Assembly (NCBI GenBank): GCA_002269645.1
Contig: NIVC01003831.1
Span: 1 to 64,000 of the forward strand
DNA from: Macrostomum lignano
Taxonomy: Eukaryota
Length of the DNA: 64,000 nucleotides
Direction of reading: 5' to 3'
Notes under the pieces: generated by a model
What the model saw: only the letters and a program-made list of their open reading frames with translations
The model's database searches: none
What the model was told of the DNA's origin: nothing
In this document: one piece after another, positions 3,201 to 33,835 of the stretch
Layout of the letters: each line of letters opens with the position of its first letter
Numbering within the stretch: position 1 is the stretch's first letter
Position numbers and translations under genes: made by a program

Positions 3201-6200
3201 TTTCCGGCGCAGCCAGGGTCGCGTTGAAATAGTTGCAGAATGCCTTGGCCTCAGCGTAGGTCATCGCCATGGCCGTCAGCTGGAAGCAGGTGCCGTTCAC
3301 GTGGAACCAGCCGAAGTCGCAGGTCTCGTTCACTTGTTTCGGCGGTACTACTGGCTCTCCTGAAGATGAGCAGCGTTCGAAATAAGATGTCAATTAGGTT
3401 AGTGTATAATATTTGTAAATATAAATATTTTAGGGCAATCTCTCGATCTTGATCTACAATTATAGAGCGCTAGGCTCCAAAAGAAGGCAGGCTATATGCC
3501 TTGATCTGATCTGTGAGTCTTTCTCCCCTGGCCGCTAGTTTTCCAACATTTTCTCATTAAAGCTCAGCTCTCTAGGAATGAAAATATTAATACTCGTACT
3601 AAGTTCTACAGACCGTAGCCACAACTCGCCAATGTTGCTTTAAAGAAATTAATAAAAAATAAGAGGAACAATGCAGAAACTGGCAATCGATCGCGGCTTC
3701 TATTCAAGGAGAAATTGTTGTCTTAATTTAATTGAAATTCTGCTACACCTACTCTCTTTTCCTTAAGTTTACATCTCTCATTATTTTTAAGCTGACTTGT
3801 TCAATACAGTAGCACTGCAGGTTAGAGAGGTAGAGTACTAAGTTAAGGCAGCTTCTAAGTTGATCTACGAGTGTAGTTAATTATTAATTATTGAATCGAT
3901 TGTAGAACCGGTCTGGCTTTCCCAGTGACTGCAGCTACGAGTATAACTAGCTGTAAGGACATAGAAGAACAATTGCAGTACATATAGAAATCGGAGTGCA
4001 TGCATTTCAAGCCATTATTGTCAGACTCGTACCATCAGCCATTAGACACGGCACGCTCTCAACAGCTGATCCAGTCGAATCCACAATCGTGACATTCGGC
4101 GCCGAAAACTGCAGCACATTTGCCTCTACGCAGGACAGACTCCTGCTAGTGGAGGGCTGGTAGAGATAAGCTTTTGAATAAACCTTCATGCTTTTTGCTG
4201 TAGCCGCTGACGCATCCGAGTAGGCCACGGGTGAATCGAAACTTGAAAACAGCAGTGGCAGCGGTGAATAGTCGAGGTTTTTGGACGCATTCAGGCACAG
4301 CTGGGACCGCTGGTTGTCCAGCACTCCGAAATAAACAAGCGGGAAAGTCTGGCTTGAAACTGGGTTGTAACCGTCACAGGTGATTAAGCCAGAACTGCCC
4401 TTGGTGATGCTGAATAGTCTCTCGCTGAAAAAAATTAACAATTTACTTTGCATTGAGTTTCTATCATCTTTATTTTTGTTCAGCCTATAAGTTTTCGGGG
4501 TTCAGGCCAAGTTTCAGCACCGGATTTGGGGTTTGGGGTGGTTTACGACGTACTTTCCGTTCACGAATAGCAAAAATATTTCTTGCGTATTAAAGCACAT
4601 TTAGATCCCCTCTCTTTTCCCTGCCCAGTGCCAACTTGCGTACGACCTCTCTCCCTCTGTGTCCGCGCTGAGGGCTTGGCTCTGTGCGTATGAGGTGGTG
4701 GTCTTGGGTGAGCTTTAGCGGGTGGCGTTGTCGTGTTTATGTGCGCTGTTCGCTCAGCGTTTTTGGCTGCGTGCATAGTAGGGTCTACGTAATATTCTGC
4801 TCTTTTATGCTCTAACTTTTTCCTCCATTCTTTAATTCACAGCCTATATTCATTACGCAGAATGTACGAAGTACTTTTAATTCGACTTCTTTCATTTTGG
4901 GGAGGGTTAATAATATTAATAATTGCAGGACAGCTGTGAGCACCCTGACGCAACGACTTAAGCGACGTCGTCCCACTACCAGCGGTTAGCCGAGTTTGTT
5001 CATTCCACTGACTCCTGACCACATAAAGGTGCACCGATACTGCATGCAGGCACGGAAGCATGCAAACGCTCATCCAGGGTGCACAGCAACCCTGATTTCT
5101 AATTGTCAGGAATGTACACTCTGTTTTTTGTACCTACTAGTACCGAACTGACAAGATGTCAACAAATAGTTTGACTTACAAAGGGCTTGAAGACTTTTGG
5201 GCCACGTTAAACAGTCCTGTGTCCAGCGTTCCATTAGACGTGTTCAATAGGGTGCTAGGAGAGAAAAAATCGTAGCAGCTTTTGCCCGTGCCATGAAAGA
5301 GCAGCCAGCAGGATGTGCCATCGTTGTTCTCGAATGTGACATTTACCAGTTCAGTGATGTTTCCTTTGTCCGTGTTCATCTGGCGCCACAGCACGTTGAA
5401 GTAGTTCATGTTTATGTCCGATCGATTGTGCAGGAACATCCGGTCGGGTAAATTCAGCGGTTGCCAGGGTAGCAGCACCAAAGGCGACCTGGCGCCGTAC
5501 ATTCGATTGTCACCGTTGTCGTTGTCTTTACCGAAACTCTTTCCAGAGTTGAGCAGCATGTCGTACACTGACGTTATCGCCTCGCCGAACAGTACTGGCA
5601 ACTGGTTCTCAATTCTGGCCGCCAGTGACCATGCTTTAACTGTAATGGAGTGCAATTTTTAAGTGCCTGAAATTTGCTTTAGAAAAGGCGTAGCTTTGTA
5701 CAGCCGACTACCGCAGTAATTTTTAATCGATACTATGCTGATCATTCATTAAATTTGTTTTCTACAGGTCAAGTTAGACTATAATATAATGCAAATCGAG
5801 ATAGTTTTTCCGTAAATATTCTCCGTAAATAGTTTTTATCAGACAGTACTTGTAAACCTTTAGATGCAGTGGAGTGCAAAGATTCAATTTAGATCTTACT
5901 GAGAATGACATAAGCGTATGAGAAGTCGCCAAGTTGTGTCCCCGCGCAGAACTGATAGGAATCTGGATGGCACTTCACCATGCACTGGCTGCGAATTTCA
6001 GCTTCACTCGTCACCAGTTGGAAGCTCTCCATCAGCTCGTCACTGTCCAAGCAAGTGCAATTTTGTCCCTCCACAATGCCAGCCGCAAGCCCGAGATGAC
6101 TGCACACCTGGTGACACTCTTGCAATGTCTGTGTTTGCATAAGGAACGAACTCCCTCGCTGGTATATTTGCGCTTTGAGAGCCAGGCTGTACTTGTGGCA

Positions 6201-9200: not shown

Positions 9201-12200
9201 AAACTTGACACCCCGATATCCGCTGAGACACTTGAACTCAACTGACCAATCTTGTACGACTTCATAGCGGTTCGACGAAGGTGGCGCAGAGATTAAAGCT
9301 GACTGAGTTCCCGGACGTGAATAGGAGCTCCAGCAAATGCGCTCTGGAGAGGGGGGTGTGTGACGGCAATGCACTAGTATAGTTCCTTCGTCTTTCCCGA
9401 CCGACTTAATGTCATATTCACGCAGCCAGAGACTTCAGTCCTATTCCTATTCGAAAAACTTACTTCGAATTCAATGGACATAAAAAATCCTAACATAAAT
9501 GGATATTTTCACGCTATTTTGGTATTTTTAGTCTTGTGAATTCATCTGACAGAGACGGTCTTAAATACACACTTTTACAGTCTGTAACGCCTTTATGAAG
9601 GTCCTTTTTATTATGAGTCGAACTATAAGTTCTACAATCCTTTAGTCGGCAAGACTAAGAAAATATTTGTTGCTTGGGCTGTTCACATCTGTCCATTGTT
9701 AAAGTCTTCGTCTGCTCTTGACTAATAGCGATTACTGTCGACATTATGGCGACAGTCGATTAGCAGCCTTCAAGAAGTTCGCCATATTACGCTGATCTGA
9801 CTTTTTATCACCAGATCAGCGTGATAAAAAGTAATAAAGTAATAAAGTAATAAAGTAAAGTAATAAAAGAAGGCGTGAATCGTTTGACAAGCTCGAAGTC
9901 AAGTTAAATCTACGATACCTCATCTTTAAGAGGCCGTGCGCATTTTTGAAAAGCTTTTTTCGTGCGACAGCCATGCGCATTTCCGCTATGCTAATCAGCG
10001 CCTATGGATCAGACATAAATTTGTATGCATAATGTACGAATATATATGAGTATACATGTACTCGAGCTGTACCACTTACCACGACAAGGATTTAGGACAA
10101 TAGTTGAATCAACAAACCACCATGGACCATTAAATCTTAGATTAAAGCCAGGACCAACAGCAAACAGGTAAACCTGCCAGTTGCTCGATGGCAAACAGGT
10201 GATGACAGCCTTGTTGGGCGGATTGTTATCATTGAACCTATAAAACTCCAGGCTTTGATTTGTGCAGACAACTTCCAGTACCGTGTCGACTGACAGGTTA
10301 TTCGATGCGTTGACCCCGGCAGTCATTAGGGACATTGTTTGAGTCTCAGGATCCCAATCGATCGGATTGTGACAGAGAACCGCTAAAACAATTGAGAAAT
10401 TGGATGAAGCAGTAAATATATTAGAATGCCCATTTAGCGCCCCTCCAGATCGATTTACCATCACAAGGTCCGATCTCTGGTCGATTTGGTCTCGGTAGAA
10501 GACTCGAAGCAAATGTCTTCGGAACTCGGCCTTCAGACTGAATGGAGTAAACTACATTCCAGCCAGAGAATGTGCACTCTAAAGATACCGCATCTGCCTC
10601 GTCTGCATGGTCTGCAAACTTGTGCCCGTATGGCGTTGGACAGGTGAAGGTAACGTTGGATCCGTAGCTTGTGTAAGCCGCAGGATCAGCACCGGCTTTG
10701 TCCGTCTTTCGCGTTGGCGCGCTACCAGTAAACTCTGGGCTTGGACAATTGAAAGCTGTAACGTACGATTGAAAATAGTTCATTTCAGATGTTATTATCA
10801 TTTGAATTTTCGTGAATCATGAGATAAAAACTTCCAGAATACTAAACAAACTTGGTTCTAGAAGGGGTACGCCAACGTAAGCGACGGTCAAAACTGACTG
10901 CAGTGAGAAACTTGTATCAGCTAACTCGTAGAAGCGGCAGAACCTATTCTATCCAAGTCTCAACCACGGGTTCCCTGGATTTCTATTCGACTGTCCTGAC
11001 AAGTTATTCATTGCAGTCGGATTGGTTCGGAGCTATATGATTGTGGCTCATTTGCGTCGCTGCTTAAGTCTACGTTTCTTTTTTTACAAAAGCATTTACA
11101 TTCTTGTTTTTGAGCAAAGGCCAAAATTCTAAAGACTACAAAAAATTTCCCCTTTCTTTTGTTGTGAAGATTTTGTTTGTTTTCTGTGTTAACCAAAGCA
11201 CAGTTTTTACCATAGCAGGCGGGAATCGTCAGCAGGGCAGTCCAATTTAGTTGCACACTCGACTGCCACGACGTTGGCCGACCGTCTCCTTCGATAAAAA
11301 ACGTGGCTTTCCAACCCAGGAAGTTGCACTGCAGGTTGAGCCGGTTAGCTTCATTTGCGCCGGAGAACAAGTAGCCAATGCCTTTTTTGCAGGTCACGTT
11401 GTAAGCCGAATGCAAAGTGAAGTCAACTGCGGTTATCCCGGGTGTAGTAGAAATTGTTTGGTGCTCCGCAGAGTTCTTTGTAAAGCTGGTGCACGTCAGT
11501 GCTGGAAGCGATTCGGTTAAATAAATGTAAAATATTCAATTTTTTATGGTAGCGCTGCTTGTTTTACAATTTGCAAAGTAATTTGACTACCAGCGTAAAT
11601 GGCTCAGGCTCAAAGAAAATCGCAACTCACGAATACATGCGCCAAACGATGGAGCAGCTGCACCGGGAACTGCCGCAATCACAGGGAAAGTTTGCGATGT
11701 GCGACCAGCAGAATCGATAGAATAGGTTAGATCCCAACCAGTGTAGTTGCATCGCAGAGTGGCAGTGTCAGCCTCGTACGGATTTCCCGGCAGGATGTGT
11801 CCGTAAGCCGAGCAGCGCACGGACACTGTAGCGCCGTATGACTGCTGGTTGGCCGGGTCCATGCCTGCTGCTACTAGCGACACGTTCAGCGAAGAGTCAG
11901 AAGCTGAGATTGCCAGACATGCGTGAACTGTTAAGGTGGGTTCGTCAGATCGGGTTGGTTTGCTGAATACTGTTATAAAGTTCTGTTGCAGTGCAAGGGA
12001 GTGGCTATTCATACGGTAGCCTTAAAGCGGAAAATTCGAATTTGAAAGAATTCAAAACTTAACCTTTTAATTTGAAAATATAGAGATTTTTTTTACGTTT
12101 AATAAAACTAAACCTGGCGTGAACTCTTCAACGACATCGTTCACAACCAGAGGTGAAGCAATTCTGTCCATTGCGCAGACTCCAGAGCACACGCAAGCGC

Positions 12201-15200
12201 GCCAATACTGTATGCAGGCACGCACTCATACACACACTTGCACAAGGGTGTACACAGACCCTAGCTTTCTAATCAATCTGGCATGCACACTTTCGGTGCC
12301 TGGGGAGTTGGCTCTCATAAGTGTGAAGCGCACGACCACCTCCGGTCAATGTTTCGTTCACAAGCCTTGAGTCGAACCAGGAGTTTTGGCGCTGTATTGC
12401 AATCGTTACTCTCTGAGTAAGGGGTGTTAGACGCGCCGGAGGGTGCCGCTGTACATATCGCTGTACTTTGGCGGGGGGTTGAGGTGTGGGGGTTGGCCAC
12501 GCCAGCCAGCTTAAAGCCTCTGCACCCGGCCCGGCTTGGCTCCGCCGCCATTTCTCAATTTTTTTGCTCAGCCACCGCCATGAGTGCCAGCCCAAAGCGA
12601 CTAACCGTGCGCCAACTCAAGGCTGAGCTGCGAAACAGAGGCCTGCCTACTACGGGCCGCAAACAACAGCTTGCCAAGCGCTTGTCTACTGCACTCGGTT
12701 TAGAGCAAGCTGACGAAGACTTCAACAACTCCGAGATGACTTCTGCTCCGGACGCCGAAGACGGCATCGGCAGCGCGGGCGAGGCGCCTCCGGGGCGGGG
12801 AGCGACCGTCTGGCTGCGTTGCGGCAGGAGGTGGAGCTGCTCGAACTGCAAGTCCTGGAAGGCCGTCGTCGTGATCTTCAGCAACAGCTTCACACTCAGC
12901 AGCGCTTGACGGCTCAGCCCCAGCCAGCATCATCATCAGGTGAGCATAACGCACATGCCAGTCTGCAGTTGCCCGAGGTTTTTGAATCTGGGATGAGGGA
13001 GGCGGCTCAGCTTCAGGCCGCTAATTGCCAGGCTCCGACTCGCAAGTTGCATCTCGTCAGAGACCACATCAAGCTAGCCAGAGGATCCGGCTCAGCCAGT
13101 CAGGAGCAGTTGATCGCCACTATGGAGAATGGCTCGCTCACATTCAGAAAGCAGGAGCCGAAGCTGTCTAGTATCTCTGCTGGTCAGTGGATCGCGGCCA
13201 ACTCGATCATCTTGCAAAAGCTGATCAAGGAAAAACTCCCGGTGGCTGCTGGAAGCACTGATGGTCTCCTGACTGACGTCCTTGGCTACCTTGACTACAA
13301 TCGCAAGATCGGAGAGCTGCTGGCTGCTGACTACCCAGAGTCCGTAATCTGGGAGTTTGACGAGGACTACCGGAGGCTGGTGGCGGAGTCGGGCATGGCG
13401 TGGGGTGAGGAGCCCCCTCAGTTGTACCACAAGCACCTCAACGCCCCCAGAAACCTGCGGTTCACGTTCGCTAAGCAGCCCAGCCAGCAGCAAATCCCGG
13501 CAGCAACCAGGCCGATCTGTCTGCGCTTCAACTCCGAGTCCGGATGCAACCGCCAGAACTGCAAGTTCCGCCACGTCTGCAAAATCCAAGGCTGCCTGGC
13601 AGCGCACCCGGCTCATGCTCACACGCAGTCGCCGCAGTCATTTCTCACCGGACAGCTGCCGGGTCACGTGACTGGTGCAAGTGCAAAAAACTGATGCCAT
13701 TTTATCCAGCTGACTGCTCTGCTTTTAATTCCGATTTTTCTGCTTTTACTTCTTCGCTGCCCATCTCGTCTGACCTGCAACCTGACGCCTGGAGTGCTCT
13801 GCTCAGCGACGACCCAGACCGCGACTTTCTGATGCAAGGCGTCGTCAACGGTTTCGCTCTCACCAATGCTGGCCAGCCACCTTTGACTTCGTCCAAGAAC
13901 CACGCCTCCGCCCTGCTGCACCGCTCTGCTGTGGAAGCCCAGGTCGAGGAGGAGCTGCGCCTTGGGAGGTACATCCGGTGGAGCGGCCCGATCAAAATCA
14001 ACCCCATCGGTGCCCTTCCCAAGTCCGACGGGCGGGTCCGCCTGATCCATGACCTGTCCTATCCGACCGGCCAGTCTGTCAACGACTTCTACGACCAACA
14101 GAAGCACATCAAGTACTGCACTGTCCAGCAGCTGGTTCGTCATCTCCATCCGGGACACTACATGGCCAAAATTGATCTCAAAAGCGCCTACAGGTCCGTG
14201 CCAATCAGGCCTGCTGACTACCGGCTCGTCGGCCTCGCCTGGCGGTTTGACTCGGACAGCCAGGACAGTCTGCTCTGCGACACCAGGCTTCCCTTCGGCG
14301 CCAAAGCTGCTTGCGAAGTTTTTCACCGTCTTTCAGCCGCCGTTACCCGGCACATGCACCGGCTTGGCTTTTCTGCTACGGTGAACTACCTGGATGACTG
14401 GGCAGTCGCTGGGAAATCCGAGTCCGAGGCTTTCGCTGCTTTCAATTGCCTGCTGGACATCTTGCAGCGCCTCGGCTTTGCCATCAACTGGGACAAGGTT
14501 GTCAGACCTACGCAATGCATCGACTTCCTTGGCGTGCGCATCAACACCGCTACCGGCACCAAGTCGCTGCCCGAGGAGAAAGCTCTCGAGACGACAAAGC
14601 TGCTGACTCAAACCTGCTCGGAGACTCGGGTGCACATGCGCTCTGCTCAGAAGCTGATTGGCAAGCTTGGCTGGTTCTGTCAGATTGTCCCTCATGTCAG
14701 AGTCTTCCTGCGTCCGCTCTTCGACTGGCTGACAACTGCTGTTGACTGCAAGCTTTGGGTGACCGATGAGACCCGCGCCAACCTGTCCTGGTGGCTCAGA
14801 GCCCTGGCTTGGCTCCCCCCGGTGCCTTTGTGGCCGCGCTTTGATGAGGAGTTTGCCATGGAGACTGACAGCAGCCGGTCGGGCGCAGCCGCAGTCATCT
14901 GGGGTGCCGAGAGTTTCTGGAGTGTCATCGACTGGGAGCTGGACTGCGGTGGTGTGTTCAAGGATGTTCATATCAACTTCAAGGAGGCTCTGGCACCTTT
15001 GCTGATCATCCTGCACCGTCGCTCTCAGCTAAAGAACTGCAAGATTGTCATCTACACCGACAGCACCGCTGCGGCTGGCATGATCAATCGACTGAGCTGT
15101 CGTGACCCGCGGTTCCTGCAGGTGTACCAGACTGTGGCTCTGCTGTGCACCAGGAACAGCATCAGTTTGGAGGCCTTTCACCTTCCTGGTCGCATGCAGA

Positions 15201-17214
15201 TTTTTGCTGATGCCGCCTCCCGCATGTTTGCCTCGCAGTCTGAGCTCATTAACTTTTGCTGCCGCTACTACCGTACGCTCGTGATCTGCCCGCTTGAGTT
15301 CGCGTCGCACGCGCTCTCTGCCGCTTCCCAATCTCGCCTCCTTTTGCAGGTCGCCCTCGCCCTCCGGAGACGCCGCCCGCCCGCCGCGCTGTGTCTGCCA
15401 GACACCTGTGCCGCCTCGGCCTGGCGGAGAACTCCTGGCGATCCTACCTCAGCCAGCTGCGCTCCTGGGAAGCCTTCTGTGTTAGCGCAGGCCGCCCTTC
15501 ATCTCCAGCTGACGGTGACCTGCTCTGCCGCTACATTGCGCACCTGGTGAGCACCCGGCTCCGGTCTTTCTCTAGCCTCCGATCCTACATCCATGCCGTC
15601 TCTTTTCTGCACCAAGCCACCGGCGCCCCCGACCCAGCGAAAGACTTCACCGTGCAGCTGGCCCTTCGCGGCGCCAAACGTCATCTCGGCCTGCGATGCA
15701 AACAGGCGAAGCCGCTGACCATCGAGCACCTCAAGAGCATCCATCAGCAGCTCCCGCGCTCCATCTCAAGCGCAGATCTCAGGGCCGCCTTCTGGGCGGC
15801 TCTTCTGGTGGGCTGGTGGGGCATGTTGCGCCTTGGCGACTTCCTATCGACCCGCGGCAGCCGCTCTGTCTCACGGGCCTGCCTGTCGGCTTCACCTGGC
15901 TGCTGGAAGTTGACCCTCCCTAAGTCCAAGACCAACCAGTTCGGGTCGACGCCGCATGTCGTTCTTCTGCCACCTGTTCAAGAGTCACCGCTCTGCCCTG
16001 TGCGCGCTCTACTGTCTCACCTGCACCTGTCACCAGCCAGCGACCCAAGGGCGCCGTTCTTTGGCTACGGCCACGGAGGCGAGCTCTCAGCCAGCCAGTT
16101 CATCAGCTGTCTTCGTGCGTGTCTGGCTGCGTGCGGCCTTCCAGCTGCGGGTTTCTCCGGCCACAGCATCCGGCGTGGGGGTGCCAGCTTCTGCCATCAA
16201 ATCGGCTTGTCAGAATCAGACGTTCGGGCTCTTGGGGGCTGGAGATCGGACGCTGTTCTCCGCTACTTTTCTGCCAGCTCTGCCCTGTCGCGCCGCCAGC
16301 GCTCTGCTTCTTTCATGGCTTCGCAGCTGCAGGCTGCGTCCACCTGACTGCCTTCCCGCTTTTACTCCTTCCCTTCCCCATCATTGGGGTTGGGATCCGC
16401 TTTCTCGGCCGCTGCCTGCTTTTCGCAACTGACTTTGTCTCGTTTGGCTCCTTCCGGCGTGTTTAATGCAATCGTTACTCTCTGAGTAAGGGGTGTTAGA
16501 CGCGCCGGAGGGTGCCGCTGTACATATCGCTGTACTTTGGCGGGGGGTTGAGGTGTGGGGGTTGGCCACGCCAGCCAGCTTAAAGCCTCTGCACCCGGCC
16601 CGGCTTGGCTCCGCCGCCATTTCTCAATTTTTTTTATCTTCTTTTTACAAACCAGTAAATATTAACTCATTTAAACTAATAAATAAACGCTTCGCTTGAT
16701 CCACTGGGATCCGCTTTCTCGGCCGCTGCCTGCTTTTCGCAACTGACTTTGTCTCGTTTGGCTCCTTCCGGCGTGTTTAATCAGACGCAATTTATCGTTG
16801 AGCTGCTCTACCGAAGGATTTAGGCAAACTTTTGCTTTAACGAAACCGTTTTTAGATTCGGGCAATAGAAGGAGGGACTACCGTACGAGCTACCAATAGC
16901 CACTACTTAAAAAGAGACTAAACAATCAAACCCATAAAAATGCAATCAGCACTCACGGATGCAGGTCAGCGACGAGTTGCTCCACACTGGCACTGGTGGT
17001 GACGATTGGCAGACAATGGAAATGGGGGAAACTGGGGGCTTCATTGTCCGCGAATCAACGTAGCCACTAACGCACTGCATCAGCACTGAGTCGCCCAGCT
17101 GATAGTTGCTAAATGAACTATTGGTCAGTGTTTGCACTGATGAGCCGTTGTTTGACACTAGTTGGAAGATCTCTTTTGTTGGATCAAAGCTCAGCTGGGG
17201 GCACACTGTGCTGC
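172..17214 (-). CDS. Large multi-exon mosaic extracellular protein (Sushi/CCP-like x~6, WSC x5, C-type lectin x3, short fibrinogen-N-like modules); partial at both ends
   Basis: 20 phase-compatible GT-AG exons read by eye: 16957-17214, 11631-11927, 11211-11501, 10459-10755, 10080-10382, 9154-9373, 9001-9062, 8215-8562, 7269-7685, 6942-7121, 6531-6803, 5900-6217, 5180-5639, 4033-4424, 2775-3359, 2056-2361, 1649-1762, 1274-1444, 372-978, 172-290. Most junctions are phase 1; total about 6.0 kb. Cys spacing matches WSC, CTLD and CCP patterns. Confidence 0.8.
372..978 (-). CDS. Exon of mosaic gene: C-terminal half of a CTLD (WWLGLTD) plus a WSC domain; two apparent 1-nt frameshifts
   Basis: ttttag acceptor; GSYWLTNASHWWLGLTDPRG, then ORF 615-1019 frame, then ORF 328-618 frame (MTLSMCRYLC...CDLPCPGNEDQFCGS); G|GTGAGA donor at 372. 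Confidence 0.7.
1274..1444 (-). CDS. Exon of mosaic gene: N-terminal half of a C-type lectin domain
   Basis: TACSSGFAFNGSCYEFVSQLVPFEVAKNSCTVRGGHLASF; ttgcag acceptor and GTAAGT donor. Confidence 0.75.
1649..1762 (-). CDS. Exon of mosaic gene: short fibrinogen-N-like module
   Basis: ATSCLELFKRGIYRSGYYIVNDERQFCYL; tttttag acceptor and GTGAGT donor. Confidence 0.7.
2056..2361 (-). CDS. Exon of mosaic gene: WSC domain
   Basis: YYGCY...RQCLSVC...RCVC...CSSTCLGNRYQSCG. Confidence 0.75.
2775..3359 (-). CDS. Exon of mosaic gene: C-type lectin domain
   Basis: CDFGWFHVNGTCFQL...AKAFC...LAAP...FWVGVAD...CNEPLAGALCEK. Confidence 0.8.
4033..4424 (-). CDS. Exon of mosaic gene, domain unassigned
   Basis: ORF 4007-4453; phase-2 acceptor matches the previous donor, phase-1 donor GTACGA. 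Confidence 0.6.
5180..5639 (-). CDS. Exon of mosaic gene, domain unassigned (many N-x-S/T sequons)
   Basis: ORF 5176-5655; phase-compatible acceptor and GTAAGT donor. Confidence 0.6.
5900..6217 (-). CDS. Exon of mosaic gene: WSC domain
   Basis: FPGCHK...TLQECHQVC...NCTC...CMVKC...QFCAG. Confidence 0.75.
6531..7121 (-). CDS. Two exons (6942-7121, 6531-6803) forming a C-type lectin domain
   Basis: CPAGWIGYQGSCYLL...SWNDSVEYCASQNAVLW / WNIGLHSW...RSICVK. Confidence 0.75.
7269..7685 (-). CDS. Exon of mosaic gene: WSC domain plus fibrinogen-N-like module
   Basis: DGCYR...ACKAHC...QCTC...CNVSC...TCGG...YNVY, then PKTCYEY...PGKYLV...VYCYM. Confidence 0.75.
8215..8562 (-). CDS. Exon of mosaic gene: WSC domain
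   Basis: YYRGCF...NTVDSCRGEC...SCLC...NCMTQCSDGEYCGG...YSVF. Confidence 0.8.
8693..8947. mobile_element. Non-autonomous foldback-type DNA transposon (MITE) with long TIRs of ~16-bp subrepeats and 8-bp TSD
   Basis: Left end GGGGGCGCTTCATAAGACCTAAATTTCACAACGCC is inverted at the right end (...TAGGTCTTATGAAAGCGTCCC); GAACTAAC duplicated at 8685-8692 and 8948-8955. Confidence 0.85.
9001..11927 (-). CDS. Block of Sushi/CCP-like exons of the mosaic gene
   Basis: Four exons of about 300 bp plus a 220 bp and a 62 bp exon, with C...YG(S/A)xV..xC...(L/I)xC..xW...C pattern; junctions mostly phase 1. Confidence 0.7.
12398..12565 (+). repeat. Split direct repeat A1 (copy A2 at 16467-16634)
   Basis: TGCAATCGTTACTCTCTGAG...CATTTCTCAATTTTTTT, no differences seen by eye between the two copies. 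Confidence 0.95.
12580..13694 (+). CDS. Gag-like ORF1: N-terminal SAP domain, coiled-coil, C-terminal Cys/His knuckle; one frameshift near 12790
   Basis: ATG in GCCACCGCCATG context; LTVRQLKAELRNRGLPTTGRKQQLAKRL (SAP pattern); continues in ORF 12819-13694 ending ICLRFN...CNRQNCKFRHVC...C...H. Confidence 0.8.
13694..15550 (+). CDS. Reverse transcriptase plus RNase H (DIRS/Ngaro pol)
   Basis: PKSDGRVRLIHDLS, KIDLKSAYR, LPFG, YLDD, FLG; RNase H TDSS...E...TDS...ADAASR. Confidence 0.95.
   Translation: MPFYPADCSAFNSDFSAFTSSLPISSDLQPDAWSALLSDDPDRDFLMQGVVNGFALTNAGQPPLTSSKNHASALLHRSAVEAQVEEELRLGRYIRWSGPIKINPIGALPKSDGRVRLIHDLSYPTGQSVNDFYDQQKHIKYCTVQQLVRHLHPGHYMAKIDLKSAYRSVPIRPADYRLVGLAWRFDSDSQDSLLCDTRLPFGAKAACEVFHRLSAAVTRHMHRLGFSATVNYLDDWAVAGKSESEAFAAFNCLLDILQRLGFAINWDKVVRPTQCIDFLGVRINTATGTKSLPEEKALETTKLLTQTCSETRVHMRSAQKLIGKLGWFCQIVPHVRVFLRPLFDWLTTAVDCKLWVTDETRANLSWWLRALAWLPPVPLWPRFDEEFAMETDSSRSGAAAVIWGAESFWSVIDWELDCGGVFKDVHINFKEALAPLLIILHRRSQLKNCKIVIYTDSTAAAGMINRLSCRDPRFLQVYQTVALLCTRNSISLEAFHLPGRMQIFADAASRMFASQSELINFCCRYYRTLVICPLEFASHALSAASQSRLLLQVALALRRRRPPAALCLPDTCAASAWRRTPGDPTSASCAPGKPSVLAQAALHLQLTVTCSAATLRTW
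15350..16347 (+). CDS. Tyrosine recombinase (YR) of the retrotransposon
   Basis: SAM-like N-terminal region, then catalytic R (GMLR), K (KSKT), HxxR (GHSIRRG), W (GGW), Y (LRY). Frame is open from 15298 with no ATG before codon ~145; the start given is the candidate splice acceptor. Confidence 0.92.
16391..16781 (+). repeat. 3' terminal region B1-A2-spacer-B2
   Basis: 77-bp TGGGATCCGC...GTGTTTAAT at 16391-16467 and 16705-16781; AT-rich spacer with AATAAA at 16678 and 16682. Confidence 0.95.
16957..17214 (-). CDS. Sushi/CCP exon of the mosaic gene, upstream of the retrotransposon-containing intron
   Basis: VCPQL...YQLGDSVLMQCVSGY...IVCQ...VWSNSSLTCI; ttttag acceptor and GTGAGT donor. Confidence 0.75.
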
Positions 17215-19020: not shown

Positions 19021-19759
19021 TCATGTGCTAGATGATCCATCCATCCATCCAGGTGAAAAACTTTACCGATCTTTGGCTTTGGCCATAAAACTGTAGAATG
19101 TGCGCTGATTGTGTAAACGCAGAAATGATTTGAATACAATTGGAGTAGTAAAATTTAACTTGATCAAAAATCGACAACACACAGAGCTTGATGTCTACGA
19201 GCTACATTTAGCAGGCAGGTCTGTATGGTAACAACTCTACTATTGCCAAAGCAGCTATTTTTAAATTTTGTAGGAAAATAGCTAAACTGCTAGCCAAAAA
19301 TTCTTATAGCAATCAGTTGTCTAGAACCATTTTTGTCTAGTAAATAAAAGATTCTGCAGCACAATGAACACTCAGACAGATGCTAGGAAGCAGCGCTCTG
19401 ACAGAGCTGGCAGCTTTATCAACAGTGAGTCTCTAAAGATTGGGTTGGCAAAATGCCTTCTCTCATTAAAGTATGATGAATGCGCGGCGCTGAAGCGACC
19501 GGCTGCTTAAAAGAGGATTTTCCGACCGATGAATTGTATACAGAAAGCTCAGCTTATGGAGACTGTGCCGAATATCTGATGAGAAGCCACTAATTGCCAC
19601 ACGTGGAAATGGCACTGTTTCACAACTGGTTTCTACATTGTCGATACTCTGAGTATTTAGGATAGATGAAGACTGGTCGCTGGAGTTTTAAAGTCAATTC
19701 GCGTTACGCTCGAAATCGTGCAAATTTCGTTGTAGCATCTCAACTTTTGAACTTTGGAA

Positions 19760-20300
19760 TTGAAGATCGAGCAGTTACGCATTTTATCTTAGATTTATTA
19801 ATGAGTTGAGCCACTCAAGTTTGAAAAGAGGACTATTGAAGGTCGAGCAGTTACGCATTTTATCTGAGATTGATTGAGGAGTTGAGCCTCTCAAGTTTGA
19901 AAAGAGGACTAGTGAAGATCGAGCAGTGACGCATTTTATCTGAGATTGATTGAGGAGTTGAGCCACTCAAGTTTGAAAAGAGGACTATTGAAGATCGAGC
20001 AGTGACGCATTTTATCTTAGATTTATTAATGAGTTGAGCCACTCAAGTTTGAAAAGAGGACTATTGAAGATCGAGCAGTTACGCATTTTATCTTAGATTT
20101 ATTAATGAGTTGAGCCACTCAAGTTTGAAAAGAGGACTATTGAAGATCGAGCAGTTACGCATTTTATCTTAGATTTATTAATGAGTTGAGCCACTCAAGT
20201 TTGAAAAGAGGACTATTGAAGATCGAGCAGTTACGCATTTTATCTTAGATTTATTAATGAGTTGAGCCACTCAAGTTTGAAAAGAGGACTATTGAAGATC
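19760..20300. repeat. Tandem repeat, 76-bp unit, about 7 copies
   Basis: GAAGATCGAGCAGTTACGCATTTTATCTTAGATTTATTAATGAGTTGAGCCACTCAAGTTTGAAAAGAGGACTATT repeated. Confidence 0.95.
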
Positions 20301-23300
20301 GGCGAAACAGTTGGGCCCTCTAATCGGTTGTCACAAAGGTTGGCTCTTTGCATACCGCGAAGCTGTGTTTTACCATAGACGAAACTCTGTCTGGGATAAC
20401 CCGTCAGGAAAAAAGACGCTTTGGGAATGGTATTTGGAAATAGGTTGGGTACTCGCCCGTGTCTATAGTTACCCACTTATGCCCGTACAATGATGAATTG
20501 TTCTGAACATGTGCATTTTATGCATAATTTTCCCAGCACAGTTGTCATTATTCTACACTTATTTCACGCTAATACAGTTATAAGCTGGGGTGGATAAATT
20601 ATAAAGATGGGAAAGCTGTCACGTGATAAAATGCGGGCATGGGGTAAAAGTACATGGCGAGCAACTGCGGAATAATAACCAAGACGAATTGCCATGTTGC
20701 CTGGTTGAAAGTAGATGTATAATGTACATGTCAAATGTCCAATACACATGCACGAGTCGTATATCGACTCACTATTTTGAGGTTGATCATTTTCACAGTT
20801 TTGGTCTTATTTTACATCGATGGCAGCGAGACCCAACTTCAAGTCAGCTACCGCCCAAGTTTTGCGGTCAATCAAACGTGCAAATTTGGTTAAGCATCTT
20901 TCGAAGACTTCGCCGAAGCCAATTATTGGGCCGATGCGGAGTGCATTGGGACGATTGAAACTTCTCTGCAGCTTTGCTTGCTTGCTTCTCCCATTTCTAA
21001 AAAGTACATTGAGAAGTATGTGAATTGACATTGGACAAAGAGCATTTTTCGTTAGAGGCAGGGGCTGTGTGCACCCTGGCAAACCTAAAGCGACATTGTC
21101 ACACAGCCGGCGAGAGGCATTACTGCCCATTCCGCCGACTCCCCTTAGCAGGCACACGAGCTCAAGGATACGTATGCAGTCGTACTCACAGGTGCACACT
21201 CACACAGGAGTGTACAGCGGCCCTAACTTTATTTATCGTTAAACATGTACACTTCACTGTGCCTTTGGGGTTGGCCCTCAAAAGCGTTAATTGCACGAGC
21301 AGAGCCAAGCCAAGATTCCAATTTAGCCTTAAATTAATGTGAATGCACTTGGAATCGAGCCTGGGCTGCTGCACTACGGCCCTGGACAAAGCGCATATAC
21401 TAAGAAGGCGAGATTGAACCAGTTCAATGTTCTAAAAAACCGAAAGCTAAGCTGAATATCTCACGAATGGATCTATGTTTATATAGATTATGCAATTCTT
21501 AGTCTAGAAGTACGAGCGTCATTTGTAGAATTCGAAGCCCTTATTTTTGCGGTGGAGACTGCCCATTCCGCTAGCCCCCGGTGGTCAAAGACAATTCCAT
21601 CGAAGTGGTGCCGCTCATGCAGGGGGACCCGTCGGTCTCGCCGAAATGGAAAAAAGTTCAGGTCCAAAACTTCTCAGGCAATGAGAATTTTTGGTCCTGT
21701 GAAAGCCTTACTGCATTTTGTCCTGGCTAACGATAGAAATTCCTTCAATTAGCTGTGAGTTTCCTTGTCTAGTTGAATTTTTCCTTTCTATTGTGCTCAC
21801 ATCGCGTACTGTTAAACAACCTGGCAATTAGATCTCAAGGTTTTGCAATCCAATTTTCCATTGTCTACGCTGAAATAAGAGCTTGAGTAGCAAAACTTAA
21901 GAGGAATTCGCTGACAGCTACCTTAATTAGCATTTTTCTAGGAATCCAAGGTAGATTAGCAACGCCCACACTACTTGAATAAATGAAAGCACAGTGCGTC
22001 AGCTATAGAATGTCTAGCAGAAAAACGGGTGAATGTGCGGACCTGCCAATCTACTTGCATACTTGATTGATTTAGCCCTAACTTGCCAAGACCTTCAGGC
22101 CTATTTTGGGAAATTCAAGTTCTGCTTAGTATAGATAGTTTTTTGCTGAATCATGTTTCAGTAGGCAGCCTATTCAAAATCTGCATTAGCCTACCATCCA
22201 TCACTTAGCGTGAAAGTCAGCTAAGCACAGTGGTACCTCCCTGCATGACCTCATCAAATATTCAGCGGCATATTCATCATTGTACATGCTTATTCATGCC
22301 GTAAATTTTATAAGTTAACAAAACTCTATGCAAATGTACGCCCAGATAAATACATACATACCGTTTGCAATAGCAGCAGTGCTCAGGTTGAAAATTCTAT
22401 CCCAGCAAAAGAATAGCTTGGATATGCCAACCGCCCTGTCAATTCCAGTTCCTGTCAATTCCAGAAATATTTTATACGAAACGCGAAACATCTGGTAAAT
22501 AAACTGGAAATTCCAGATATGTACTTTTAGCAAGATGTTCATGATATCAAGCTATTTTTCATGAACTGCAAGCAAGTTCCGGCAAAGTTTTAGTTGTTTC
22601 TGTCTCTGGGTCGTTCTCAAATTCTGGGAGGAGCAAAAATTTTAACAATTTTCGGAACATTTACTATTGTTACTGCCGTATTGAAAATAATAGGACACTT
22701 TCATCTGTGAATAAAGATAATTTTTAGGTTGAAATTTATGTTGCAAAAGTGTTTTAAGTTGTCTTGCGGTATTAGGCGATATTAGGTGATGAAAAAATTC
22801 AAATTCAATCACTTCACCGATGTCCTAATTTTTGACACTATGATGTCTGTAGCTAAAAAAAGTTGTTGTTGTGTTGAAAACTTGCTATATTACATTTAAA
22901 ATGAAAGCTTATATAAATTTAATTTAAGATTTTTTTTAAAGCTTAATAAACTGCACTATAAATGATTTTATAGACGCTTAACTGTACGCCTAGCATTTCC
23001 GGTGGGATAGCCTCTTCTCATTTCACAAAATGTATTTTTCAGCTGACGTCTAGAATGTGCGCTTAAAATGATACATTTTGATGCAGATAATTAGAAAAAC
23101 ATGTCTTATTATCTTTTTGTAAAAATTGTTATGAAATAGAGTACTATTGTTGATAAAAATAATTAAAAGCAACCATGCATCGCAATAAACTCCTACTTTG
23201 AAGCACAAAATAAATATCCTGTAACCACACTAGCATTCTCCATGGAGCACCTTTTGAGCTGAAAGTTTACACAGATATCGAGTAAAGTAAACTGAGCAAA

Positions 23301-28988: not shown

Positions 28989-31900
28989 ATGGGCAAAGTA
29001 TCAAAAATGCTAGAAGATGCCTTGCAAGAGCGCATCCTTATCATGGATGGTGCCATGGGCACCATGGTTCAGCAGCTACATCTTGAAGAGAATGATTTTC
29101 GTGGAGAAGAATTTGCCCAACATTCAAAGTCCCTAAAGGGCAACAATGATTTGCTGACTCTTGTCAAGCCAGATGCAGTTTATAACATTCACAAGGTATA
29201 ATTTCAATGTTATTTACTTATTGTATATACATTCAATGTAATGTTAACTATCTTAGAAACTTCCCTTTGAGCCATGGCACCTTAGCTTCCCCCTAAGCCA
29301 TGGCCCCTCAGCATCCCCCTTGAGCTGGGGCCCCTCAGCATCCCCCTTGAGCCGTGGCCCCCTCAGCCTTCCCTCTTGAGCCGTGGCCCCTCAGCATCCC
29401 CCTTGAGCTATGGCCCCTCAGCATCCTCCTTGAGCTATGGCCCTCAGCATCCCCCTTGAGCCATGGCACCTCAGCATCCCCCTTGAGCCATGGAACATCA
29501 ACATCATCCTTTAAGCTGTCACAACTGAATCGCTCCACCCACTTGGCAGCAATACCTGGCCGCCGGATCCGATATTATCGAGACCAACACATTCTCAGCT
29601 ACGTCGATCGCCCAGGCGGACTATGACCTTTCTCACCTGGCCTACCGCCTCAACGCCGAGGCCGCCCGCATCGCTAGGCGAGCCTGCGACGACATCGAAG
29701 CCGCCGACTTAGCCGCCGGTCTCCCGGCCCGGCCCCGCTTTGTAGCTGGCGCCCTGGGCCCGACCAACCGCACTCTGTCCATCTCGCCCTCAGTGGAGCG
29801 GCCAGACTACCGCAATATTACATTTGAACAGCTCGTTGAGGCCTACTCTGACCAGGTAATTTCGGGGGGTCAAGGTCAAAGTAGATGGTTGCGAAACTAC
29901 TTTACATTACCAAGAATGGAGATTTTTATTTTTTAGCACAAAATTTGCTGTTGCCATTGATAGCAAACAGACCTAATGCTCATCTTTATAGCTCTATTGA
30001 GATTCGCAAAGCTTTTTGTTCAGTAAATTAGGACCCTATGATAATGAACATGCGCAACCCCCTGATTCACACCGGCCGTGTGGATTACCTTTAAAAGCTA
30101 AAATTAACGTACTATGGGTAAACGAAAAGAGTAACTATGACTGTATTATTAAGGCTAAATGCCTCGTAGTCTATTAAGTACTAAAGCCTGTATTTTTTCG
30201 GGTAGGCATTTTGCGACTTTTTTTGGCTGGGACCCTCGCCAGCCGGCGGGATCATAATCGCATGTATGATAGTGAAAGCCTCCATTGTCAGTAGTGTATT
30301 GTTTCGGTAAAACCCTCCTACATGTAGAATTCTCCAAGAAACTTAGTAGCTTCCCGCTCTACTACTTTAACTAGTCCTTGGTTCGAAGCCTGTAAAACTT
30401 GTGCTAGGCAAGCATAAAATTCGCGTCTTTCTAGCAATAATTTAAACAAATGAAAAAACACCAAACAGACTCGCGGTCTGCTTGACGGAGGAGCCGATCT
30501 GCTCCTAGTAGAAACAATCTTCGACACCGCCAACGCCAAGGCGGCCATCTTTGCCATTGAGTCGCTATTCGACTCTGGCGCCTACGACCGTGTCCCCCTG
30601 CTTGTGTCCGGCACCATTGTGGACCGCAGCGGTCGGACACTGTCCGGCCAGACCACCGAGGCTTTCGTAGCCAGCGTCTCCCATGGCCGGCCGCTCTGCC
30701 TCGGCCTGAACTGCGCCCTCGGCGCCTCCGAGATGCGGCCCTTCATCGAGAGGCTGGGCCTGGCCACCCCGGCCTACGTGCTGTGCTACCCCAATGCCGG
30801 CCTGCCAAACACGTTCGGCGAATACGATGAGACCCCGGCTATGATGGCCGCCAATTTGGAGACCTTCGCCAAGGACGGCCTGGTCAATCTGGTTGGCGGC
30901 TGCTGCGGCACCACACCGGCTCACATCAGCGCCATCGCCAAGGCTGTGAGGCCGCACATGCCGCGAACTCGGCCAAATCCGCACCCCAATGCTCTGGTGT
31001 TGTCAGGCCTGGAGGCCAGCATTGTTACTAAGGAGACGAATTTTCTCAATATTGGCGAGCGCTGCAACGTGGCTGGCAGTAGGAAGTTTTGCCGCTTAAT
31101 TAAGACTAACGCGTTTGATGAGGCACTTAGTGTGGCTAAGGAGCAGGTGGAGAATGGAGCCCAGGTGAGACAGCTCAGTTTCCTTTGTTTCGTCATTTAT
31201 TGTGTTACTAGGGCTAATCTGTTAGTGTAAAATCCCTATTATGACATTAAAAATCGCCACTACACCCAGAATCCCCACTATACCACACCCAGAATCGCCC
31301 CCATACCACACCCAGAATCCCCACTATACAACACCCAGAATCCCCACTATACCACACCCAGAATCGCCCCCATACCACACCCAGAATCGCCCCCATACCA
31401 CACCCAGAATCGCCCCCATACCACACCCAGAATCGCCCCCATACCACATCGAGAATCGCCCCCATACCACATCGAGAATCGCCCCCATACCACACCCAGA
31501 ATCGCCCCCATACCACATCGAGAATCGCCCCCATACCACATCGAGAATCGCCCCCATACCACACCCAGAATCGCCCCCATACCACATCGAGAATCGCCCC
31601 CATACCACACCCAGAATCGCCCCCATACCACACCCAGAATCGCCCCCATACCACACCCAGAATCGCCCCCATACCACACCCAAACCCCATACAAAACAGG
31701 TGCTGGACGTAAACGTTGACGACGGCATGCTGGATGGGCCGGCCTGCATGACCCGCTTTCTCAACCTGATCTCCTCCGAGCCCGACGTCGCTGTGCTGCC
31801 TCTGTGCATTGATTCGTCAAATTTCGAGATTATCGAAGCCGGCCTCCGCTGCTGCCAGGGCAAATGCATCGTCAATAGCATCAGCCTGAAGGAAGGCGAA

Positions 31901-33835
31901 GACGATTTCTTGCGCAAAGCGTCGCTTGTTAAACGATACGGCGCCGCCGTTGTTGTCATGGCATTTGACGAGCAGGGCCAGGCAGCTGATCTGGATAGGA
32001 AGGTGGAGATCTGCCAGCGCTCGTATCGGTTGCTAACAGAGAAGGTGATGCTGAAATAGTGGATGTGACTCTGTGGCTCTAGTTAGCGTATAAGGACAAG
32101 TCTATGAGATCTGGAATCCTTTCAAGCGATATTGATGCTTGAGATGGTAGCTTAGGGTGGTTTCAGGTGGTAGCTTGCTTCATGGTAACTTTAGATATGT
32201 TTAGAATAGTTTTGATGGATTAAAAATGTTATTTTGAATAGACTTAAGGTGGTATTTTAGATCATTTTTGAATGGTATTTTAGGTAGTTTTTTAATTAGA
32301 TTAAGGTAGTTTTTTAGGTAGATTAAGGATCGTAAATTAGGTAGTTTTAGGACTTTTTTAGGTAGATTTAAGGTCGTAATTTAGGTACTCGTAGATTAAG
32401 GATGCTAGCTTCGGTAGATTTATTATGGTATTTTAGATGGATTTAGGATGCTAGTTTAGATAGATTTAGGATGCTAGTTTAGGTAGATTTAGGATGCTAG
32501 TTTAGATAGATTTAGGATGCTAGTTTAGGTAGATTTAGGATGCTAGTTTAGATAGATTTAGGATCATACATGCGCAACAGTCGGCCGAGTCGGCCGATTC
32601 GGCCGACCAATTTGGCGGCCAACCAAGGAAGTCGCAAAAATGCCATCCCAAAAAATTACCAAGTAGTAGTACTAAGTAGCTGACGAGGCATTTTGGCCTA
32701 ATAAGACAGTCATAGTTACTCCTGCTGTTTACCCAAAGTTGCGTTAATTTTCTTTAGGGTTTTTCACGTAAGTCGCATTTTTGACCAAAAACTACGTCGC
32801 ATTTTTGTTAAAACTAAGTCGCATGGCCGACCGAATTTCGGAGGTTGCGCATGTATGTTTAGGATGCTAGTTTAGATAGATTTAGGATGCTAGTTTATGT
32901 AGATTTAGGATGCTAGTTTAGGTAGATTTAGGATGCTAGTTTAGGTAGATTTAAGATGCTAGTTTAGGTAGATTTAGGATGCCAGTTAAGTTAGGTTTAG
33001 GATGCCAGTTTAGGTAGGTTTAGGATGGTATTTTAGGTAAATTTCAAGATTTCAGAATTCCGATATCACGTAGTTTTGGATCGGTGGGCAGTTTGTAGTC
33101 TATTGTTTGTGGGACTAATCGCATTCGGTAAGCTTATTAATAGTTGTCATAAACAATAATTAATGACCGGCTGCAGATCAAGTTCAATCCGAACGACATC
33201 ATCTTCGACCCGAACATCCTGACCATCGCCACCGGCATGGACGAGCACAACAATTACGCCATGGATTTCATCGGCGCCTGCCGGTTTATCAAATCCACCC
33301 TGCCGGGCGCCCGGGTCAGCGGCGGGGTCTCCAATCTCAGCTTCAGCTTCCGCGGCAAGGACAGCCTGAGGGAGGCCATGCACTCGGTGTTCCTGTACCA
33401 CGCCATCGCCGCAGGCATGGACATGGGCATCGTCAATGCCGGCTGTCTGCCGCTATACAGCGACATCCAGCCCGACCTGCTGGAGCTCTGCGAGGATCTC
33501 ATTCTCAATAGACGACCGGAAGCCACCGAGCGGATGCTGACGTACGCCCAGAGCCTCCAGGCTGGTTCGGGCGGCCGTCGGGACGAGGACCCCGCCGCCG
33601 AGGCCTGGCGCTCCGGCGACGTGGAGACCCGGCTGGAGCACGCGCTGGTGCACGGTATCGACCGGTTCGTGGTGCAGGACGTTGAAGAGGCCAGGCTCTG
33701 CACGGAGAAGTGAGTAGGACTGTTTCAGTGTCCGTATTTTCTGTCTGTCTATCTGTCTGTCTGTCTGTCTGTCTATCTGTCTGTCTGTCTGTCTTAGTGT
33801 CTGTCTGTCTATCTGTCTGTCTGTCTGTCTGTCTA

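Follow-up and report, generated by a model that had tools for sequence, protein, structure and literature searches.

The gag-pol junction of a retrotransposon carried by a 64,000-nt stretch of Macrostomum lignano DNA (assembly GCA_002269645.1, contig NIVC01003831.1, positions 1 to 64,000 of the forward strand; hereafter the window) is, with high probability, a site of −1 programmed ribosomal frameshifting by classical tandem slippage. The element occupies positions 12395–16781 of the window, on the plus strand like all the features of it mentioned below, and is by its architecture a Ngaro-type tyrosine-recombinase (YR) retrotransposon. Frameshifting is very probably how this element family makes its reverse transcriptase (RT), because the slippery heptamer A_AAA_AAC, its phase and its position at the end of gag are conserved, and because most relatives have no alternative start for pol. 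That ribosomes do slip at this site we infer from what is established about tandem slippage.

As read directly from positions 13560–13860, the gag-like open reading frame (ORF) ends at 13694, and the last twelve letters (13683–13694), in phase with the ORF upstream, are GCA AAA AAC TGA, i.e., GCA at 13683–13685, AAA at 13686–13688, AAC at 13689–13691 and TGA at 13692–13694. The same reading places the heptamer A_AAA_AAC (13685–13691) in X_XXY_YYZ phase relative to gag, with the gag stop adjoining it. The RT ORF lies in the −1 frame with respect to gag, reads AAA AAA CTG ATG CCA across the junction and is open in translation from 13475 to 15550. Positions 13475–13694 are open in the gag and pol frames alike, and the sole canonical in-phase heptamer of this double-open stretch stands at its 3' end. 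The 4.4-kb element has one AAAAAAC, against 28 on the two strands of the 64-kb window, and the chance expectation for an in-phase AAAAAAC within the 220-nt gag/pol overlap is about 0.01–0.02. Coincidence is already unlikely for the window copy alone, although one sequence cannot tell signal from chance. The gag stop also overlaps an ATG of the pol frame (TGATG at 13692–13696, the ATG being at 13694–13696), and the junction 12-mer, AAAAAACTGATG, is unique. An earlier note, made from the letters of this DNA, had described the same letters, the same phase, the RT in the −1 frame and the TGATG overlap, all of which the direct reading of the window bears out. As a separate observation, a perfect 10-nt palindrome, GTCACGTGAC, which contains CACGTG, is found at 13663–13672, 13 nt upstream of the heptamer.

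The comparison with relatives covers 82 related loci from public assemblies, comprising the DNA of two Pol homologues and 80 further loci from metagenome contigs; the Gag, Pol and recombinase of the window were placed on each locus by tblastn and the frames were then read. The protein search with Pol gave 46 homologues, the best of them with 43% identity. This homologue is the closest relative, L001. It shares the layout of the window, with TCA AAA AAC TAG as the last letters of gag, with pol at −1 and free of ATGs in its frame, and with the recombinase at a further −1. Of the 82 loci, 21 combine pol at −1 with an identical, in-phase A_AAA_AAC where gag ends. In what follows, 22 elements means the window plus these 21 relatives, and the tabulation of 21 elements means the window plus 20 relatives, L053 having been added separately. 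When the 22 elements are compared with the heptamer as the anchor, its seven columns are all 100% conserved and the base just 5' of it is 91% conserved; the other columns from −25 to +36 reach 27–73%, a column identity at which the flanks are unalignable across elements. The elements that share the heptamer are distant from each other (Pol identity of 32–74%, with a median of 44% and values above 60% in 3 of 136 pairs) and are scattered over the RT tree, between lineages with other arrangements. The earlier note had proposed conservation of the heptamer in other copies as a test, with free variation as the outcome that would count against a signal; among these distant relatives the heptamer is invariant.

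Could the frame difference between gag and pol be nothing but a mutational break of the window copy, or an assembly error? The window copy does have one frameshift break elsewhere in its gag, but the same −1 gag/pol arrangement is found in about 35 of the about 70 relatives with a readable junction. By this recurrence, as the relatives are read here, such an explanation is already refuted, and its probability is close to nil.

The gag stop keeps close to the heptamer. Of the 22 elements, 11 have the stop directly after it (0 nt), six have it at a distance of 3 nt and two at 6 nt, which puts the stop within 6 nt in 19 of 22, where random stops would give about 13%. The most compact junctions belong to six loci (L008, L024, L033, L039, L064 and L067), in which the pol frame opens 3–6 nt before the heptamer and gag stops 0–6 nt after it, the gag/pol overlap being 13–22 nt long with the heptamer inside. 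In these loci the frame change is possible only within those 13–22 nt, and therefore in a stretch that contains the heptamer.

The phase of the motif bears on a different route to the same frame change, namely transcriptional slippage, in which the polymerase would add one A to some transcripts at the six-A run (13685–13690) and thereby bring pol into the gag frame. One added base would have this effect; nevertheless, polymerase slippage is indifferent to codon phase, yet in the tabulation of 21 elements (20 relatives and the window) every AAAAAAC in the last 60 nt of gag is phased as X_XXY_YYZ (21 of 21), and neither of the two remaining phases is seen. Position 7 of the heptamer is invariably C. 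Furthermore, other canonical heptamers stand at the same place, G_GGA_AAA in L052 and G_GGT_TTT in L062, both of them tandem-slippage motifs and not long homopolymers; four relatives have near-canonical versions there. Slippage of the polymerase is accordingly a very unlikely source of Pol. The recoding review PMC5009743 counts both A_AAA_AAC and G_GGU_UUU with the heptamers at which eukaryotic ribosomes shift most readily.

The codons and start codons around the junction bear on two further alternatives. In one of them pol would have an independent start, through leaky scanning or internal entry, at the ATG at 13544 or the one at 13694, with the heptamer being coincidental or merely the Lys-Asn end of Gag. 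The window pol frame does have these two ATGs, but neither of them is conserved and most relatives have none: in 15 of 20 relatives, the pol frame is free of ATGs from where it opens up to the first conserved Pol motif. The many gag ATGs upstream are contrary to leaky scanning. As for the end of Gag, the gag-frame codons in the heptamer are always AAA and AAC in the 22 elements, and a Lys-Asn constraint on the protein would permit the synonymous AAG and AAT, which are never seen. An independent start is, all considered, extremely improbable.

In the other alternative, termination-reinitiation, ribosomes would end gag at the TGA and restart at the ATG that overlaps it (13692–13696), making Pol as a separate protein. 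The stop-start overlap does exist in the window, within the unique 12-mer, and resembles that of calicivirus termination-reinitiation. It differs from the calicivirus case in that the overlap is not conserved in this Ngaro-type family: an ATG overlapping the gag stop is present in 1 of the 21 heptamer-bearing elements, which is the window itself, and the two letters needed beyond the TGA arise by chance about once in 16 cases. The relatives devoid of a pol-frame ATG ahead of the conserved Pol motifs (15 of 20) count against it as well, and so does the poor context of the ATG at 13694 (C at −3 and C at +4). Reinitiation after an ORF of about 370 codons requires a dedicated upstream signal, and none is known here, though no search aimed at one was made. 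The TGATG of the window reads as chance, peculiar to this copy, and production of Pol by reinitiation has a slim probability; a minor extra contribution could concern the window copy only, and nothing supports it. Thus, where the earlier note held that either or both of frameshifting and reinitiation could produce Pol, the −1 frameshift part is strongly supported by the 21 relatives and the termination-reinitiation part finds no support. Splicing as a route to pol was also considered and rejected, since no more than 2 of 21 loci have an acceptor-like site close to the junction.

With −1 frameshifting as the preferred reading, ribosomes on the gag-like ORF would arrive at A_AAA_AAC (13685–13691), and the majority of them would decode AAC, hit the TGA directly after it and release Gag. 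A minority would slip back by one base with both tRNAs, from AAA to AAA in the P site and from AAC to AAA in the A site, and would go on in the −1 frame (CTG ATG CCA ...), giving rise to a Gag-RT/RNase H fusion. The gag stop near the heptamer could be a part of the signal, or else the result of keeping the two-frame overlap minimal, which explains the proximity of the stop equally well.

There are observations that weigh against programmed frameshifting at this site, the first of them being the lack of a stimulator. No stimulatory structure is found in the window by folding predictions that were scored in three ways and that do not extend to pseudoknots, long-range pairings or protein-dependent stimulation. 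The 150 nt from the heptamer have z=+2.21, folding worse than 196 of 200 dinucleotide shuffles, and the 80 nt after the heptamer fold at only −4.5 kcal/mol (z=+1.16). The tract 3' of the shift site (13695–13780) is pyrimidine-rich and unstructured, and no other 60-nt stretch of the element has less structure (99th percentile). The earlier note had remarked that no obvious downstream stimulatory hairpin was to be seen, in agreement with these predictions. Nor is any structure consistent among relatives, whose z-scores average about −0.3 and range from −2.29 to +1.33; some of them have local hairpins of 8–11 bp beginning 2–20 nt downstream of the heptamer. A scan of the whole window against Rfam at gathering thresholds gave no match, and hence no known frameshift element. 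Apart from the structure, the relatives are metagenomic contigs, their conservation is partly a matter of shared ancestry, so that counts of relatives are not independent events, and the host genome contributes a single copy, whose gag has one frameshift break. With no downstream structure, frameshifting in the window would rest on the heptamer, perhaps together with the stop codon or a trans-acting factor, and it may be inefficient in this copy.

The arrangement is like the gag-pol shift of retroviruses and long terminal repeat (LTR) retrotransposons (Ty3/gypsy, BEL and others), in which an X_XXY_YYZ heptamer lies near the gag end, pol is at −1 without its own start and a minority Gag-Pol fusion is made. 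According to PMC5009743, −1 gag-pol frameshifting with A_AAA_AAC is textbook knowledge for retroviruses and LTR retrotransposons, and a 2003 survey cited there counted 28 animal LTR elements out of 51 with pol at −1, classical heptamers being present in many of them. Unlike retroviruses and LTR elements, the host of the present site is a YR retrotransposon with neither a protease nor a DDE integrase, and because the element has no protease, there would be no element-encoded one to cut the Gag-Pol fusion. The site itself is also unlike the retroviral and LTR ones, in that neither a stem-loop nor a pseudoknot can be detected 3' of it in the window and in that the 0-frame stop adjoins the heptamer in most members of this Ngaro-type family. 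In the latter respect it is like the −1 site of a plant umbravirus, where the 0-frame stop is likewise within one codon of the shift site: the umbravirus stop is located one codon downstream, and frameshifting drops strongly when a sense codon replaces it, an effect that does not depend on 3' structure (PMC5009743). The umbravirus, nonetheless, is an RNA virus with additional RNA elements, whereas the role of the stop in the element is only suggested by proximity.

What is described here is therefore a canonical mechanism, now in an element class where no published description was found. No slippery site is named in the open literature on Ngaro elements, the original Ngaro descriptions being outside the search, so that a passing remark there is possible; a full-text search for Ngaro together with “slippery” returned nothing relevant, and the recoding review PMC5009743, in its available part, makes no mention of DIRS or tyrosine recombinases. 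In this the open literature agrees with the earlier note, which knew of no such description for YR retrotransposons. Published accounts of Ngaro and YR elements describe their ORFs as overlapping or “frameshifted” (PMC3783388, PMC9210276), and Ngaro elements are said usually to lack overlaps (PMC3266345); in the accounts consulted, the way in which the downstream proteins are produced is not stated. The conserved heptamer offers a concrete and checkable answer to how Pol gets made in YR retrotransposons, and a rule for annotation comes with it, namely that a frame change between gag and pol in Ngaro elements should not count as a mutation. In this family a stop codon stands beside the −1 sites, some of which have local RNA structure and some of which do not.

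The −1 heptamer is one of several arrangements at this boundary. In 22 loci (L004, L006, L007, L010, L011, L013, L015–L019, L026, L034, L035, L043–L045, L063 and L077–L080), gag and pol are in one frame with a single stop between them. This in-frame stop is TAG (13 loci) or TGA (9 loci) and never TAA, and it is followed by G in 11 of the 13 cases of TAG and by C in 6 of the 9 cases of TGA. TAG-G and TGA-C are stop contexts that favour readthrough, and the in-frame stop at the same boundary looks like programmed readthrough in place of the frameshift. In about 12 other loci pol is at +1 to gag. Six of these (L012, L014, L022, L025, L037 and L042) form a clade sharing CGT TTT CGT, in gag phase and 3–21 nt before the gag stop, which is a candidate +1 shift site (TTT then C), not known to match an established one. 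Because closely interleaved lineages have a −1 heptamer, a single stop in a leaky context or a +1 arrangement at this one boundary, recoding signals may be usefully compared within the family.

And how is the recombinase made? Its ORF overlaps the end of pol and is at −1 to pol in 32 loci, at +1 in 20 and never in frame; a canonical heptamer is absent from this overlap, and about half of the loci have no ATG. What 42 of 55 loci do have is a pyrimidine tract followed by YAG/G (the slash marking the splice junction), at a distance of 47–80 nt ahead of the recombinase core, as compared to 28% of control stretches of equal length that hold such an acceptor-like site. The site is in the same phase to the recombinase frame in 39 of the 42, whichever frame pol has. 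In the window, the predicted acceptor (pyrimidine tract and CAG/G, in phase 1 to the YR frame) is at 15331–15349. On the donor side, strong sites were defined as those with at least 8 of 9 matches to MAG/GTRAGT, and most relatives have such donor-like sites inside gag, after the N-terminal domain. Strong donors are in phase 1 in 22 of 26 cases in gag versus 12 of 24 in pol ORFs, and the members of one clade share the Gly codon at which the donor lies, immediately ahead of a conserved motif of gag. The best splice-donor-like site of the window element (cag/GTGAGC at 12937–12945, with its G at 12940) is predicted in phase 1 in gag, and this donor-like site (G 12940) and the acceptor-like one (AG at 15348–15349) are phase-compatible.

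If the exons are joined as they stand, open frames of 368–549 aa result in 12 of 16 testable relatives, which is partly so by construction, the sites having been picked by phase. From these patterns we infer a spliced mRNA as the source of the recombinase, which would be fused to the N-terminal SAP or SAM-like domain of Gag; the conserved phase-1 intron would remove the rest of gag and all of pol. A protein search with the recombinase for annotated or transcript-derived fusions of a Gag N-terminus to YR returned only 19 recombinase-sized ORFs. Other splicing schemes were discarded. A short intron reaching the YR acceptor from the conserved His-Met/Val-Ser motif with which pol ends finds no GT in several loci and has lengths with the wrong frame remainder. 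No conserved donor is found in the last 40 codons of pol, and a donor directly after the gag ATG is present in only 4 of 17 loci.

Taken together, Ngaro-type elements might run a retrovirus-like programme, in which a −1 shift with a heptamer and an abutting stop, but without an obligatory RNA structure, is combined with a spliced mRNA for the recombinase, sister lineages having swapped the shift for a leaky stop or a +1 site; this broader proposal is tentative and, in our judgement, rather less than an even bet. The mechanism at the junction is in itself unsurprising, and what makes the family worth a specialist's look is the strict conservation by the stop, the missing stimulator of the window copy and the fact that so small a family combines recoding with probable splicing.

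The assignment of the element as Ngaro-type is made because it has split direct repeats, a gag-RT/RNase H-YR order and no methylase. The repeats follow the layout A1, ORFs, B1, A2 and B2: A1, the 5' split direct repeat, is at 12395–12565 and pairs with A2 at 16464–16634 (171 nt each, 99.4% identity), and B1 at 16391–16467 pairs with B2 at 16705–16781, which closes the element on its 3' side (77 nt each, 100% identity). The 70-nt spacer between A2 and B2 (16635–16704) is AT-rich and contains AATAAA-type motifs, and may be the polyadenylation region of the element transcript. The A1...B1-A2-B2 repeats, the gene order and the lack of a methylase are as in the published descriptions of Ngaro elements, which belong to the DIRS order (PMC3783388, PMC8547959, PMC9210276), and the absence of the methylase sets the element apart from DIRS1-like and PAT-like ones. 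No methylase, protease or DDE integrase is found in the element, the Pfam matches in pol being to RT and RNase H only.

The gag-like gene (12580–13694) has a SAP domain (DNA/chromatin-binding) at its N-terminus (12595–12690, Pfam E=1.4e-11), a difference noted with respect to published Ngaro elements, and a Cys/His zinc-finger-like region at its C-terminus (13518–13622), which together with the central part is common to the gag ORFs of relatives. Many relatives carry a different, SAM-like helical domain where the window gag has SAP, and because of this replacement the N-terminal module of Gag is, by comparison of the loci, exchangeable among these related elements. The window gag is split over two frames by its one frameshift, in relatives with the same gag type (L020 and L023) gag is a single continuous ORF of 349–361 aa, and the pol and recombinase regions of the window copy are open. 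The near-identical terminal repeats (99.4–100%) suggest a young insertion, and since gag is broken in spite of them, the window copy is probably young but dead, or else misassembled. The shift signal is intact, yet given this break the copy may no longer be expressed. No second copy of the element was found within the 64-kb window.

Pol, taken as the −1 frame that follows the shift site (13691–15550) and identified by Pfam and its 46 homologues, contains the RT (14126–14542, with a YLDD motif; Pfam RVT_1, E=3.7e-12) and an RNase H-like domain (14840–15085), the match of the latter to Pfam RT_RNaseH being weak (E=0.0055) and below the Pfam cut-off. After the RNase H-like match, the acceptor-like site comes about 90 codons on and the pol stop about 155 codons on. 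This pol tail has no Pfam match and is too short for the methylase of DIRS-like elements, which is reported as about 284 aa (PMC9210276). The tyrosine recombinase coding region (15350–16347) lies at −1 to pol, whose end it overlaps, and lacks an ATG ahead of the conserved core. Its best solved relative is Cre recombinase (E=3e-11), it has a weak match to Phage_int_SAM_1, and the HxxR and catalytic Tyr motifs are visible in its translation.

Elsewhere in the window, neither tRNAs nor 18S rRNA are found. Just upstream of the element, the stretch at 12126–12291 is 71% identical to that at 4957–5120, each of them being about 165 nt long, and the pair is a dispersed repeat unrelated to the element. 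A tandem array of about nine copies of a 76-nt unit, with 72–95% identity, lies at 19683–20377, 3 kb downstream of the element. Finally, an exon-like ORF at 31241–32059 has a pterin-binding domain and homologues annotated as cobalamin-dependent methionine synthase; it is about 70% identical to animal and fungal proteins alike, and belongs to a host gene.

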